Assembly (NCBI RefSeq): GCF_000009045.1
Contig: NC_000964.3
Span: 620,001 to 684,000, forward strand
DNA: 64,000 bases
Reading direction: 5' to 3'
Source of the DNA: Bacillus subtilis subsp. subtilis str. 168
GTDB taxonomy: Bacteria > Bacillota > Bacilli > Bacillales > Bacillaceae
Made by a program: the position numbers and the translations under genes. Below are positions 30,234-43,201 of the stretch, piece by piece (positions within the stretch are counted from its first letter, which is position 1; the number at the start of each line of letters is the position of its first letter). The notes under the pieces were generated by a model. The model did no database searches. It was not told the DNA's origin and saw nothing but the letters and a program-made list of their open reading frames with translations.

Positions 30234-31868
30234 ATGGCAAAAGAAATTAAGTTTAGTGAAGAAGCTCGCCGCGCAATGCTTCGCGGTGTCGATGCACTTG
30301 CTGATGCTGTTAAAGTAACTTTAGGACCAAAAGGACGCAACGTGGTTCTAGAGAAAAAATTCGGTTCTCCGTTAATCACAAATGACGGTGTAACAATCGC
30401 TAAAGAAATCGAGCTAGAAGACGCGTTTGAAAACATGGGTGCTAAGCTTGTTGCTGAAGTAGCCAGCAAAACAAACGACGTTGCCGGTGACGGTACAACA
30501 ACTGCAACAGTTCTTGCGCAAGCAATGATCCGTGAAGGCCTTAAAAACGTAACAGCAGGCGCTAACCCTGTAGGCGTGCGTAAAGGGATGGAACAAGCTG
30601 TAGCGGTTGCGATCGAAAACTTAAAAGAAATTTCTAAGCCAATCGAAGGCAAAGAGTCTATCGCTCAGGTTGCTGCGATCTCTGCTGCTGATGAGGAAGT
30701 CGGAAGCCTTATCGCTGAAGCAATGGAGCGCGTAGGAAACGACGGCGTTATCACAATCGAAGAGTCTAAAGGCTTCACAACTGAGCTTGAAGTTGTTGAA
30801 GGTATGCAATTCGACCGCGGATATGCGTCTCCTTACATGGTAACTGACTCTGATAAGATGGAAGCGGTTCTTGACAATCCTTACATCTTAATCACAGACA
30901 AAAAAATCACAAACATTCAAGAAATCCTTCCTGTGCTTGAGCAGGTTGTTCAGCAAGGCAAACCATTGCTTCTGATCGCTGAGGATGTTGAAGGCGAAGC
31001 ACTTGCTACACTTGTTGTGAACAAACTTCGCGGCACATTCAACGCAGTGGCTGTTAAAGCTCCTGGTTTCGGTGATCGCCGTAAAGCAATGCTTGAAGAC
31101 ATCGCTGTCCTTACTGGCGGAGAAGTCATCACAGAAGATCTTGGCCTTGACCTGAAATCTACTCAAATCGCTCAATTGGGACGCGCTTCTAAAGTTGTCG
31201 TTACTAAAGAAAACACAACAATCGTTGAAGGCGCTGGCGAAACAGACAAAATTTCTGCCCGTGTGACTCAAATCCGCGCTCAAGTGGAAGAAACAACTTC
31301 TGAATTCGACAGAGAAAAATTACAAGAGCGTCTTGCTAAACTTGCTGGCGGCGTAGCTGTCATCAAAGTCGGCGCTGCGACTGAAACTGAGCTGAAAGAG
31401 CGTAAACTTCGCATCGAAGACGCCTTGAACTCAACTCGCGCAGCTGTTGAAGAAGGCATCGTATCCGGTGGTGGTACAGCGCTTGTAAACGTATATAACA
31501 AAGTCGCTGCAGTTGAAGCTGAAGGCGATGCTCAAACAGGTATCAACATCGTGCTTCGCGCGCTTGAAGAGCCAATCCGTCAAATCGCACACAACGCTGG
31601 CCTTGAAGGATCTGTCATCGTTGAGCGCCTCAAAAACGAAGAAATCGGCGTAGGCTTCAACGCTGCAACTGGCGAATGGGTAAACATGATCGAAAAAGGT
31701 ATCGTTGACCCAACAAAAGTTACACGCTCAGCTCTTCAAAACGCTGCGTCTGTAGCTGCAATGTTCTTAACAACAGAAGCTGTTGTCGCTGACAAGCCAG
31801 AAGAAAACGGTGGCGGCGCAGGAATGCCTGATATGGGCGGCATGGGCGGTATGGGTGGAATGATGTAA
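30234..31868 (+). CDS. groEL: chaperonin GroEL
   Basis: 544 aa; GDGTTT motif and GGM-repeat tail. Confidence 0.99.
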
Positions 31869-31955
31869 TAAAGGGATATTAACCCTTATACATCAATGTT
31901 TTAACCGTCTTAAAAAACTAGACAAAGCGTGAATAAAAAAAGAGAAGGTCTTTCA

Positions 31956-33047
31956 TCAGTTTACTAAACTGTTGGGAGACCTTTTCTCCATATTAGCGGT
32001 CATATGAGCATAAATGTCCATCGTCGTATTTATGTCCGAATGACCAAATTGTTGCTGGATTTCTTTAATGCCTACTCCTGCCTCAATTAGTAAGGAGGTA
32101 TGGGTATGCCTAAAAGAGTGGGGGGTGACATTCTTTTTATCCCAGCTTTTTTGAGCAGCCGTTTAAGTCTAGTCTCAATAACCTTTCTTAATTGCGGATG
32201 ACCATCCTCCCGCTCAAAAATAAATGATGAGTCTTGATAAATCAATCTATTTTTAAGCTTAATTTCATTTTGATAAATTTTATTTTTTTTTAGTAGATTG
32301 ACATCGTTTCATCAATTCGAACGATATCAACAGATCCTGTTGTTTTAGGTGTTAGCAATTGGTATTTTTCAATTTGATTGTTAGGGGTGTATAGGGTCTT
32401 TGTGACCTGGCTTATCATTGAAATCTGTCCATTTTAAAGCAAGAAGTTCACCAATTCTTAGGTCGGTCTAGGCAAGTACGGTAAAGACCAAATGGTCCAT
32501 TTCTAGCCCGTCAGATTGAGCGAGCTTTAGAAAATGTGTCAGCACCTCTTTTTCCAATGCTTTGTTGCTTCTTGGGTAATTGAAAATCCCCAGTTGGGTT
32601 CATTTTAATAATCCCTTGAGTTTTAGCTTTTCGGAAAATCATACGGCCGCAGGCATGAATACCTCCCAAACAATTGTGACTGTATTGCTCGTTCAGTTCT
32701 AACGTGCGGTCTTCATACATTTTTTTGTGTTTTGCTAATCGGGTATTGACCCAATACTGCGATAAAATGCATCATTTTCTTTTCACTGGCCCGTACACTG
32801 CTTATTTTTACCCCACTCCGGTTGTAAATCTTAAGCCAACCTTTTGCAAATGTTTTGAAGGGCATATCTGACTCCTTAATAAAAGTCCCGTTGTCGTTTT
32901 GGAGTTCTACGTGACGGGCTGCTACTGGGGCTTCTTTCTTTGTTTTAAATCTTCCTTTGGATATTTCTAGACGTTTTTTGGTTAAAGGGTCAATGCCTAG
33001 TAGATATGATAACTCCACGTCTTACCGCATTGCTTGAGTTTTGCCAT
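31956..33047 (-). pseudogene. ydzT: tyrosine integrase with multiple frameshifts and stops
   Basis: Pieces across frames: MAKLKQCGKTWSYHIY / LGIDPLTKKR...FKTKKEA; FTVLA*TDLRIGELLALKW; LLTPKT; VTPHSFRHTHTSLLIEAG...FGHSDINTTMDIYAH. Confidence 0.9.
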
Positions 33048-33208
33048 TTATTTGTCCCTAACTAATTTTTTTTCATCAAATTGGTCTTTAAGTGAGTTTA
33101 ATAATTTTTGTTTCTCTCGACTGGTCAATAATTGCCCTTCATATTTCAAAAGATTGGATAAATTTGAGATGGAATCAATCCTGATGGATTCTAAAAGCTT
33201 TGTAAATT
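33048..33208 (-). pseudogene. C-terminal stub of a probable repressor gene abutting int
   Basis: Start-less open frame ...LSNLLKYEGQLLTSREKQKLLNSLKDQFDEKKLVRDK* whose TAA directly precedes the int ATG (TAAATG); the repressor identity is inferred from position and resemblance only. Confidence 0.4.
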
Positions 33209-33365
33209 TCTAATTTTATCCTGGCCTACTGTGCAACAGACCTTCTTAATCGAGCCTAATTTTCCATCTATTTGATTGGGGAACAAATGGCTTTTTAACA
33301 AGAAAGAAGTCCAAGAATACATTGATTGGTGGTCAATTGAGGTTAAAAGGAAAAAGAGGGCCTGA
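33184..33365 (+). pseudogene. excisionase-like HTH DNA-binding protein remnant
   Basis: LSWPTVQQTFLIEPNFPSI*LGNKWLFNKKEVQEYIDWW, with internal TGA at 33273-33275 and an upstream frameshift. Confidence 0.55.
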
Positions 33366-41627: not shown

Positions 41628-41629
41628 CT

Positions 41630-43027
41630 ATGGATAAGTCAAGTAAGTTCTTCTTTGAAGATCAAAAATACAATAAAGAAAGGATTGTACGTGTACTCGG
41701 TGGTAATTTAGCTTTACTCAAAAGTAAAGGTATATTATATGAAGATTCTAGTGGGGATTTAATATTTAACTATGTAGGTGTTATATCTAATGGGCGCAAT
41801 GTAATATTCATTTTGCCTAAATACTGTAACAGGCACTTAGATGAACATTCAAAGCGGACTTTGTTTAATAAGTTGCTGAAGATTTTTAAAAAATATTCAG
41901 GTTTAAATAAAAGCCGGGAATCTGATTATTTCGTATCGGAGCTAGATAGTGATGAAGTCTCCGACTTTATGATAGCAGATTATTTGCTTAATGATTTCTC
42001 ATTGAATGGGTATTATCAAAAAAAATTTACTGAATATGAAATTGATGGAGAAGGAATTATAGATTGGAGTAAGACAGTTAATGAAATTACCCCAGTATTC
42101 TCAAAGGGAGTTCCATATTATTTCAGTACTTATAATGAAGTGGTACAAAAAGACGAGTATCACTTGATAGTTAAAATTCATAAATGGGCTTTAAGTAAAT
42201 ATTTTAATGATTTCGGAGTCATTTTAGGTTTTACGGGACTAGAATTTGATAAATCCTGTGATGGTATGAAAATTTTGGACTACGCTGATTTTTTTGGCTC
42301 AGTAATAAATAAAGAAATCGTGAACACATATGTTGATCGTGACGTTAAATTGTTAAAGGCATTGAAAACCGCAATTGATAGGGAAGAGAATCAGTTTTCT
42401 AAACGACCCACTCTTTCTCTGTATGGAACAAAATACTTTCACAGAGTATGGGAGGAAGTATGTAAGACCGTATTTTCCCATGTTAATGAATACGTAAAAA
42501 AGATATCAAGGCCAAATTGGATTAACTTTACGGATATAGAGGTTAATAAAGAGAAAAAAACACTAGAACCCGATATTATTAAGGCTTTCGAATACCGTTC
42601 AAAAGAATACTTTTTAATATTAGATGCTAAATATTATAATATAAATTTTGACGGAAAAAAGCTGGAGGGGAATCCTGGGGTTGAAGATATAACTAAGCAG
42701 CTGTTATATGATAAGGCACTTGAAAAACTGTCCAGAGGTAAAACAAAACATAATGCTTTTCTGTTTCCTTCCTCTAATTCAACCAATACCTTTAAAGTAT
42801 TTGGTTCTGTTGATTTTGATTTTCTTGATATAGCCGCTGTAACTCTTGTTTATATTTCTGCTGAACAAGTTTATAACTTATATCTTGAAAATAAAACATT
42901 TTCCACTGATGACTTATTTAAATTTGTAAGTGAAATTAATAAGTCAAAAAAACGACATAGCGTTATAACTTCAACATTGTATGGTAATATGTTTTTGTTT
43001 ACAAAAAGATTAAGTGATAAAAATTAG
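41630..43027 (+). CDS. ydjA: McrC/LlaJI-like PD-(D/E)xK nuclease, BsuM restriction subunit
   Basis: IIDWSKT and FHRVWEEVC segments; catalytic EPDII...ILDAKYY...DITKQLLY. Confidence 0.88.
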   Translation: MDKSSKFFFEDQKYNKERIVRVLGGNLALLKSKGILYEDSSGDLIFNYVGVISNGRNVIFILPKYCNRHLDEHSKRTLFNKLLKIFKKYSGLNKSRESDYFVSELDSDEVSDFMIADYLLNDFSLNGYYQKKFTEYEIDGEGIIDWSKTVNEITPVFSKGVPYYFSTYNEVVQKDEYHLIVKIHKWALSKYFNDFGVILGFTGLEFDKSCDGMKILDYADFFGSVINKEIVNTYVDRDVKLLKALKTAIDREENQFSKRPTLSLYGTKYFHRVWEEVCKTVFSHVNEYVKKISRPNWINFTDIEVNKEKKTLEPDIIKAFEYRSKEYFLILDAKYYNINFDGKKLEGNPGVEDITKQLLYDKALEKLSRGKTKHNAFLFPSSNSTNTFKVFGSVDFDFLDIAAVTLVYISAEQVYNLYLENKTFSTDDLFKFVSEINKSKKRHSVITSTLYGNMFLFTKRLSDKN

Positions 43028-43183
43028 TTCTAGAAGGTTAAAAGCCGATAACATAATACTTGTCCTCGGTTTTGTCCTCCTATAGTTTTAAAAATATTTA
43101 TCAGCATTAAATGTTAAGTCTAAAAAACAGTATTTTGAGCTGGTTTTTTTAATACTATTTTCAACTGTTATTAGTCGGAATGA

Positions 43184-43201
43184 ATGGGTTGCATGATGTA
43201 A
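43184..43201 (+). repeat. degenerate att core (copy of the groEL 3' end)
   Basis: ATGGGTTGCATGATGTAA versus ATGGGTGGAATGATGTAA at 31851-31868. Confidence 0.75.

Follow-up and report, generated by a model that had tools for sequence, protein, structure and literature searches.

Prophage 3 of Bacillus subtilis 168 as a probable dead copy of a PICI-type phage satellite integrated at the 3' end of groEL

Segment 31851-43201 of a 64,000-nucleotide stretch of the Bacillus subtilis subsp. subtilis str. 168 chromosome (NC_000964.3, positions 620,001 to 684,000 of the forward strand; hereafter the window, numbered from its first letter), the region known as prophage 3, is probably a dead copy of a phage satellite of the phage-inducible chromosomal island (PICI) type, from a Bacillaceae family of elements that integrate in the last 18 nt of groEL. 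Strain 168 is the model organism for Gram-positive bacteria, chassis strains routinely have prophage 3 deleted, and BsuMI, the restriction-modification (R-M) system carried within it, is a barrier limiting transformation of B. subtilis. A sequence-only reading of the same DNA had placed between two attachment (att) sites a leftward integrase, a leftward repressor stub, Xis, a Prim-Pol/PriCT primase and the small terminase subunit (TerS), followed by R-M cargo, and all of these parts are confirmed at their places and in their order. The att cores lie 11,333 bp apart from start to start, in agreement with the earlier estimate of about 11.3 kb, and the features of the segment, together with groEL itself, are as follows.

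30234-31868: groEL, preceded by groES
31851-31868, + strand: attL core ATGGGTGGAATGATGTAA, the final 18 nt of groEL, stop codon included
31942-33047, - strand: tyrosine integrase pseudogene, with Arm-DNA-bind_4 (N-terminal piece) and catalytic domain
33072-33158, - strand: C-terminal stub (~29 aa) of a helix-turn-helix (HTH) repressor, the remainder deleted
33148-33359, + strand: remnant of Xis (HTH_17-type excisionase), without ~20 N-terminal residues and with 1 frameshift
33432-34518, + strand: primase-replicase pseudogene, PrimPol and PriCT_1 parts (aa 1-362 of ~808)
34540 to ~34975, + strand: terS pseudogene, full length, with at least 3 frameshifts
35223-37697, + strand: bsuMA (ydiO) and bsuMB (ydiP), intact 5-methylcytosine (m5C) methyltransferase genes, 427 and 394 aa (PADLOC MTase_II, Pfam DNA_methylase)
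37793-39240, - strand: phosphoglucomutase-type pseudogene between the M and R operons (PGM_PMM_I 1.4e-10 and PGM_PMM_IV 2e-4, on separate frames)
39596-43027, + strand: bsuRA (ydiR), bsuRB (ydiS, AAA_5/McrB-like) and bsuRC (ydjA, RE_LlaJI), intact, 322, 343 and 465 aa (PADLOC REase_II)
43060-43079, + strand: putative arm-type integrase-binding repeat TTGTCCTCGGTTTTGTCCTC, ~105 nt left of the attR core, occurring once in the window
43184-43201, + strand: attR core ATGGGTTGCATGATGTAA, with 2 mismatches to attL

The ancestral element would have read attL, int and repressor, then on the opposite strand cro, xis, a PrimPol-PriCT-DUF927 primase/replicase gene and terS, followed by cargo and attR. 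This core order, with accessory genes after terS, is the one described for PICIs (PMC10085698), as the sequence-only reading had stated.

The evidence that carries this interpretation comes from the closest relative, L131, a 12,746 bp contig (Ga0671521_0001737) of JGI metagenome 3300080625 that opens with the final 40 codons of a Bacillaceae groEL. Its primase (P0069) is the closest of 83 retrieved proteins to the window pieces (57% identity, residues 1-362), and by DNA as well L131 is the nearest relative, being syntenic with the window. Three blocks align by blastn at 71-75% identity, namely L131 1-1514 with window 31741-33148, 2305-3665 with 33148-34509, and 5332-5568 with 34523-34759. The element is intact, bounded by a perfect 21-nt repeat at 108 and 12651 (12.5 kb apart), and contains the following genes.

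Left arm: integrase, 388 aa (leftward); HTH repressor, 156 aa (leftward); cro-like HTH_3 protein, 82 aa; HTH_17 Xis, 92 aa
Core, continued: primase, 808 aa, then Terminase_2 TerS, 157 aa
Cargo: DndB-like gene, IetA (PADLOC 3e-85) and IetS (4e-53) at 6160-11164, followed by two open reading frames (ORFs) of no assigned family

The defence cargo of L131 begins directly after terS, and no terL, portal, capsid, tail or lysis gene was found in the element by Pfam and PHROGs. It had been predicted that relatives of 10-15 kb with the order int-rep-xis-pri-terS and neither terL nor capsid should exist, and L131, intact, 12.5 kb long and integrated at groEL, is such an element. The opposite outcome, in which the closest intact relatives are prophages of more than 30 kb, did not materialise, since all 12 independent loci of the primase family that were examined (L131 and eleven others) are small islands and 0/12 is a full prophage. 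In the terms of SatelliteFinder, L131 possesses four of the five PICI core components and no forbidden ones, corresponding to its 'Type B'. The pathogenicity islands of Staphylococcus aureus (SaPIs) are reported in the same four-of-five class, and the fifth component, often present in Proteobacteria, is missing from many PICIs of Firmicutes (PMC10085698). This component, a capsid-morphogenesis or redirection gene, was found by Pfam and PHROGs in neither the window nor L131, and both likewise lack the components forbidden in PICIs (tail, holin, portal and head-tail connectors).

A direct connection to the staphylococcal islands is provided by the L131 primase, which matches phrog_8841 at 9e-164 and, in a collection of 50,697 phage records, is closest to 'Staphylococcus phage PT1028' (E 5e-77, residues 265-805). 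The record of that name corresponds to SaPIpT1028, an S. aureus island that is a prototypical PICI (PMC12409344). The repressor of L131 consists of an HTH domain only, without an S24 peptidase and with no adjacent ImmA-type partner, a make-up that fits helper-dependent over SOS-dependent induction, although it is no proof of it.

The integrase pseudogene survives as at least six stop-free pieces, of which the C-terminal one matches Phage_integrase at 1.6e-13 (Pfam), with PHROG matches as well; at the nucleotide level it is 78.5% identical to L131 int, with ~9 frameshifting indels and 1 in-frame stop. The regulation module, represented in L131 by an intact HTH_3/HTH_31 repressor and cro, is reduced in the window to the 29-aa repressor stub (55% identity to residues 128-156 of the L131 repressor, pairwise BLASTP E 4e-9) and the truncated Xis, which matches residues 21-41 and 37-91 of the L131 Xis at 71-80% identity (tblastn); the latter protein has HTH_17 and excisionase PHROG matches.

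Several pieces of the primase pseudogene have no Pfam or PHROG match. The 135-aa N-terminal piece, which has no Pfam match, aligned by phmmer against 1.84 billion representatives with the first ~120 residues of 55 proteins, mostly of 550-870 aa, and relatives combine Prim-Pol and PriCT_1 with DUF927, a P-loop helicase domain. The catalytic DxD motif, IDIDD in the window, is conserved, and none of 50,697 phage genomes matches the PrimPol piece. Because tblastn with every full-length relative (L001, L131 and others) ends at residue ~362, at window position 34518, the DUF927 helicase half has been deleted, leaving aa 1-362 of a PICI-type PrimPol/PriCT_1/DUF927 primase-replicase. A small terminase is present both in the window and, intact, in L131: region 34540-34689 matches Terminase_2 at 2.5e-9 (Pfam) and phrog_51 at 3e-12, and the window TerS shares 75% identity with L131 TerS over aa 1-48 and 41% over aa 50-149 (tblastn). 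The window TerS piece itself has no match in IMG/VR, and a search with the TerS region returned its own fragment only. As noted before from the DNA alone, the segment shows no capsid, portal, tail or lysis genes. It also bears no trace of them and leaves no room for any, as other genes fill all 11.35 kb.

The att sites complete the picture of an integrase at one end and a specific site with flanking direct repeats. Even with 3 mismatches allowed, the att core occurs only twice in the window, and two copies arose in 0/100 shuffles. The attL core is homologous to those of L131 and L135, in both of which the repeats are perfect, and L131 12647-12701 (attR and 33 nt of its right flank) aligns with window 43180-43234 at 74.5%. 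The arm-type repeat TTGTCCTCnnnTTTGTCCTC stands beside both attL and attR in L131 and beside attL in the B. atrophaeus locus L006; the window has kept its repeat at the attR side only, the attL copy having been deleted. That groEL serves as a PICI attachment site, as the sequence-only reading had stated, is borne out by staphylococcal PICIs, which use the last 18 bp of the gene (PMC8125051).

Comparison with L131 also makes the extent of decay apparent. A first deletion, with its junction near 33148, removed the counterpart of L131 1515-2304 (most of the repressor gene, the divergent promoter region, cro and the first ~20 xis codons), and a second, with its junction at 34509-34523, removed that of 3666-5331 (primase residues ~363-808 and the spacer before terS). 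Codon-aware, pairwise DNA alignments against L131 place frameshifting indels plus stops at ~9+1 in int, 1+1 in xis and ~8+1 in the remaining part of the primase gene, and at least 3 in terS, the last count being rough at 65% identity. The total amounts to ~20 or more frameshifts and two internal deletions, with attL arm sites lost and att cores diverged; int, xis, rep, pri and terS are all broken, and the 168 copy is unable to mobilise. With the two deletions added back, the ancestral element would have measured ~13.9 kb. As the sequence-only reading had proposed, this damage in ~3 kb of mobility genes contrasts with zero disruptions in the 5.9 kb of R-M ORFs, and the phosphoglucomutase pseudogene is broken as well. 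Because the R-M ORFs are intact and all other genes are broken, the former may have been kept by selection or R-M addiction while the rest drifted. The two deletions, the lost attL arm sites, the phosphoglucomutase pseudogene within the cargo and ~1.5 kb of low-GC DNA past attR go beyond what had been read before.

The cargo of the 168 element is a LlaJI-type R-M system with two m5C methyltransferases, a McrB-like AAA subunit and a RE_LlaJI subunit. BsuMI is functional and recognises CTCGAG (PMC11311917). YdiR, YdjB and YdjC have no Pfam or PHROG match. The phosphoglucomutase/phosphomannomutase pseudogene has a GC content of 0.43-0.46, against 0.29-0.38 in the surrounding island, and looks like a captured chromosomal fragment separating the M and R operons. 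M.BsuMA (35223-36506), searched against 5.8 billion clustered proteins, has no relative above 57% identity and led to no intact BsuMI-carrying island; the named sources of its next-best matches include Proteobacteria (Pseudomonas, Stenotrophomonas and Pseudoduganella). The history of the R-M module is different from that of the island backbone. With respect to the backbone, the earlier proposal of a Bacillus PICI as ancestor holds for the PICI type, whereas 'Bacillus' is right only at the family level, the nearest intact relative being a Bacillaceae metagenome contig.

Besides L131, the loci examined for the primase family and its left arm include the following.

L135 and L136 (B. cereus BAG6X1-2), between groEL and guaA, with 18-nt repeats 12.8 kb apart: int, repressor, xis, primase, portal, S78 protease, capsid, HNH, small ORF, terL and head-completion protein
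L137 (Neobacillus), at groEL: same left arm, Type I R-M cargo at 14333-20939, no detectable terS
L132 and L138 (Planococcus), at groEL: protease (none detected by Pfam in L138) and a 990-1180-aa protein, that of L132 with a PhageMin_Tail domain
L139 (Domibacillus), at a different site: NYN, UvrD_C_2, and an AAA + Peptidase_S8 pair (20321-22409)
L001 (B. thuringiensis plasmid): int, repressor, xis, primase, sigma-r4/DUF1492 regulator and a Terminase_5/4-like ORF
L006 (B. atrophaeus): another decayed copy, its frameshifted Int 73-87% identical to the L131 Int
L134: same left arm, with Replic_Relax and ALP genes

The genes that follow the core differ among copies, and the defence slot in particular is occupied by BsuMI in 168, by IetAS with a DndB-like gene in L131, by Type I R-M in L137 and by the AAA and S8 pair in L139. 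To judge from gene content, L135/L136 and L009 have the layout of a capsid-forming PICI (cf-PICI). A further right arm combines a ClpP- or S78-type prohead protease (L132 9420-14988, L138 14124-19216, L008 8356-13145, L133 4041-6343) with a protein of 900-1180 aa in L132, L138 and L008; Pfam picked up neither capsid nor portal nor terminase in these four, and the combination may represent a satellite layout not yet described. In L006, a groEL-type att core (7743-7760) lies just left of the decayed integrase, no groEL occurs within 7.7 kb leftward (1-7700), and the locus lies within a predicted viral contig of 69 kb, an arrangement suggesting that a prophage and a satellite remnant occupy the groEL site in tandem.

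By analogy with SaPIs (PMC10085698, PMC8125051), we infer helper-phage induction and packaging for the ancestor of the 168 element and for all its Bacillaceae relatives. A helper phage would lift the repressor, after which Int and Xis would excise the island through the core and the TTGTCCTC arm sites, the latter presumably bound by the Arm-DNA-bind_4 domain. Pri-Rep would then replicate the excised island, and the island TerS could redirect the large terminase of the helper, so that island DNA is packed in helper-made particles. In a new host, Int would reinsert the island at groEL, with the stop codon rebuilt and the gene undamaged. The slot after terS would hold defence genes, which in 168 are those of the LlaJI-type BsuMI.

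Several observations, however, weigh against the satellite interpretation. The assignment draws on gene content and homology, and helper, induction and packaging are deduced rather than observed. The TerS relatives other than that of L131 (35-61% identity, IMG/VR) reside in ordinary phage-sized contigs, and in 72/80 of them a terL-sized ORF of 374-494 aa follows. Members of the integrase family are found in true phages too (Geobacillus phages, 53% identity) and in a relaxase-bearing island adjoining groEL (L130), and DUF927 helicase domains are found in some real phages at 26-32% identity. L131 itself is a metagenome contig, is only 71-75% identical, and has no recognisable capsid-size-redirection gene; moreover, genes absent from L131 could have been lost from the window with the pri-terS deletion. 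It should also be borne in mind that some of the relatives are cf-PICIs or relaxase carriers.

The link to relaxase-bearing islands was traced through a groEL 3'-end codon pattern, which among the matches listed revealed related integrases beside groEL in L069 and L124. Following the L124 integrase led to L130 (Lentibacillus salicampi, 3100-9874), an island with a MobA/MobL relaxase and RepA, whose integrase is 70% identical to the C-terminal piece in the window and lies 2.4 kb from groEL. Because this integrase sits in a relaxase-bearing island, integrase similarity is not diagnostic of element type. More generally, integrase and TerS are common to several kinds of element, and it is the primase and the overall architecture that carry the signal, because the TerS and integrase families also occur in ordinary phages and relaxase islands. 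A profile scan of genome contigs with a 4-sequence alignment gave no confirmed match, the window itself apparently being masked there.

These considerations bear first on an unlikely alternative that nevertheless retains some weight, namely that the segment is a non-viral integrative island, either a plain defence island or one resembling an integrative mobilisable element, which replicated by Pri-Rep, captured terS and spread by mobilisation or transformation. The occurrence of Replic_Relax and ALP in place of packaging genes behind the same left arm (L134), of MobA and RepA with a related Int at groEL (L130) and of an island without detectable terS (L137) would all be in keeping with it, as would the fact that no helper phage is known. 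On the other hand, integrative mobilisable or conjugative elements are marked by a relaxase and/or oriT, or a coupling protein, and by Pfam neither the pieces in the window nor L131 contain a relaxase domain or an oriT-type gene; relaxases do occur in the more distant L130 and L134. A conserved terS, intact in L131, right after pri is a PICI hallmark (PMC10085698), the sister elements L135 and L009 encode full capsid-packaging modules that tie the family to phage particles, and Rep is homologous to the Rep of a proven SaPI, all of which favour the satellite over a non-viral island.

It is quite improbable that the segment derives instead from an ordinary temperate siphophage in which one deletion took everything from terL through lysis, fusing terS to moron or cargo genes by attR. 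Of the equipment of a temperate tailed prophage (terL, portal, major capsid, tail, lysis, a length of more than 30 kb) none exists in the window. The copy does carry large internal deletions, its Terminase_2 TerS is of phage type with other relatives in 30-45 kb viral contigs next to a terL-sized ORF, and its integrase family is found in real phages. However, the closest relative is intact between perfect att repeats and passes from terS straight into defence cargo, which is difficult to reconcile with such a fusion. In addition, the primase follows xis directly with no phage early region between them, the PrimPol piece is unmatched among phage genomes, and primase relatives in a full prophage number 0/12 loci.

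Least credible, and highly improbable, is that the segment is a degenerate cf-PICI whose portal, protease, capsid, HNH and terL genes were lost, and not a classical PICI with terS only. In the B. cereus group, cf-PICI layouts sharing the int-rep-xis-pri arm do occupy this groEL site (L135, L136, L009), and the window deletion between pri and terS falls where their morphogenesis genes lie. However, DNA homology to L131 restarts 16 nt upstream of the terS start, L131 has terS directly after pri, and none of the cf-PICI components (own capsid, portal, protease, head-tail adaptors, HNH, terL) is found in the window or L131. The TerS candidates of cf-PICIs (112-115 aa) have no Terminase_2 match and precede terL, whereas terS in the window leads into cargo.

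Beyond the PICI-type reading of the 168 element, it is conceivable, albeit somewhat doubtful, that one conserved left arm, comprising the groEL-targeting integrase with its TTGTCCTC arm sites, an HTH repressor, cro/xis and the fused replicase, serves interchangeable right arms across Bacillaceae. These would be terS with a defence slot (168, L131), a full capsid-packaging module as in cf-PICIs (L135, L009), a prohead protease with a 900-1200-aa tape-measure-like protein (L132, L138, L008, L133), or a relaxase/partition module (L134). If so, PICIs, cf-PICIs, an undescribed satellite type and mobilisable islands would interconvert by module exchange, and this exchange would take place at a shared att site, the GGM-tail codons of groEL, from Staphylococcus to Bacillus.

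The surroundings of the att sites display additional features. In the GC profile, a low-GC stretch (0.29-0.40) runs from the groEL 3' end to ~44700, ahead of gutR. Just outside attR, on the + strand at 43288-43324, stands a terminator-like hairpin (17-pair stem, then a run of T) that may be the original groESL terminator, pushed away by the insertion. At the other end, the GGTCT...AGACC hairpin and the integrase 3' end (31942-32002) are 92% identical over 61 nt to two Peribacillus frigoritolerans plasmids; the hairpin now probably terminates both groEL and int. Beyond attR (43202-44700), ~1.5 kb of further low-GC DNA (0.33-0.35) contains two ORFs without family match (43601-43936 and 44319-44669) and may be the remnant of another element once tandemly inserted at groEL; no third att copy was found beyond attR within the window. 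Among the matches listed for the groEL 3'-end codon pattern in genome contigs, mostly from Proteobacteria, no empty attB of the B. subtilis group was present, and an exact look-up of the GroEL protein returned 168-like strains only, all with the same decayed island.

Collectively, reading prophage 3 as a dead PICI would explain the origin of BsuMI and re-reads a landmark region of a model genome. Elements of the L131 type offer a concrete intact template for seeking the first Bacillus helper-satellite pair, the slot after terS appears to be where defence systems are exchanged (R-M, IetAS, Type I R-M), and the groEL-3'-end attachment site of staphylococcal PICIs is extended to Bacillaceae. PICIs and cf-PICIs have been reported computationally in Bacillus (PMC10085698; bioRxiv 10.1101/2022.09.08.507074). 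PICI-type satellites are thus a known kind of element, of which 168 prophage 3 would be a further member. One preprint states that prophage 3 'no longer qualifies as a prophage', and no paper in the literature searched, beyond which others may exist, reads it as a PICI remnant.

Compared with SaPIs and other Gram-positive PICIs (SaPIpT1028; SeCISE48 at groEL), the reconstructed 168 element and L131 share a size of 11-14 kb, an integrase at one end, a leftward repressor facing rightward cro/xis, a primase-replicase with DUF927 helicase (E 5e-77 to the Rep region of SaPIpT1028), and terS as the last core gene before the accessory genes, without structural or lysis genes. The att site, the last 18 nt of groEL, is likewise that of staphylococcal PICIs (PMC8125051). 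They differ from these islands in their Bacillaceae host, in the fusion of primase and helicase in one ~800-aa protein, in having no recognisable interference genes of the cpm, ppi or pti type and no known helper, and in carrying a defence system in place of a toxin or resistance gene; in addition, the 168 copy is non-functional. With cf-PICIs (bioRxiv 10.1101/2022.09.08.507074, PMC10085698) the left arm and groEL att are shared through L135, L136 and L009, whereas the window and L131 contain only a Terminase_2 TerS and lack the portal, protease, capsid, HNH, terL and head-completion genes. BsuMI resembles other LlaJI-type R-M systems in its two m5C methyltransferases and its AAA_5 (McrB-like) and RE_LlaJI-domain subunits, but differs by the extra subunit YdiR and by M and R operons that lie ~1.9 kb apart with the phosphoglucomutase pseudogene between them. 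Phage satellites such as P4-like elements and E. coli PICIs have defence-system hotspots. Such hotspots are mentioned in the discussion of PMC10085698. The slot described here differs from them in its position after terS at the attR end and in its Bacillaceae setting, and among its cargos BsuMI is the only one whose anti-phage activity has been tested; like those hotspots, it is a fixed slot occupied by different defence systems in different copies.

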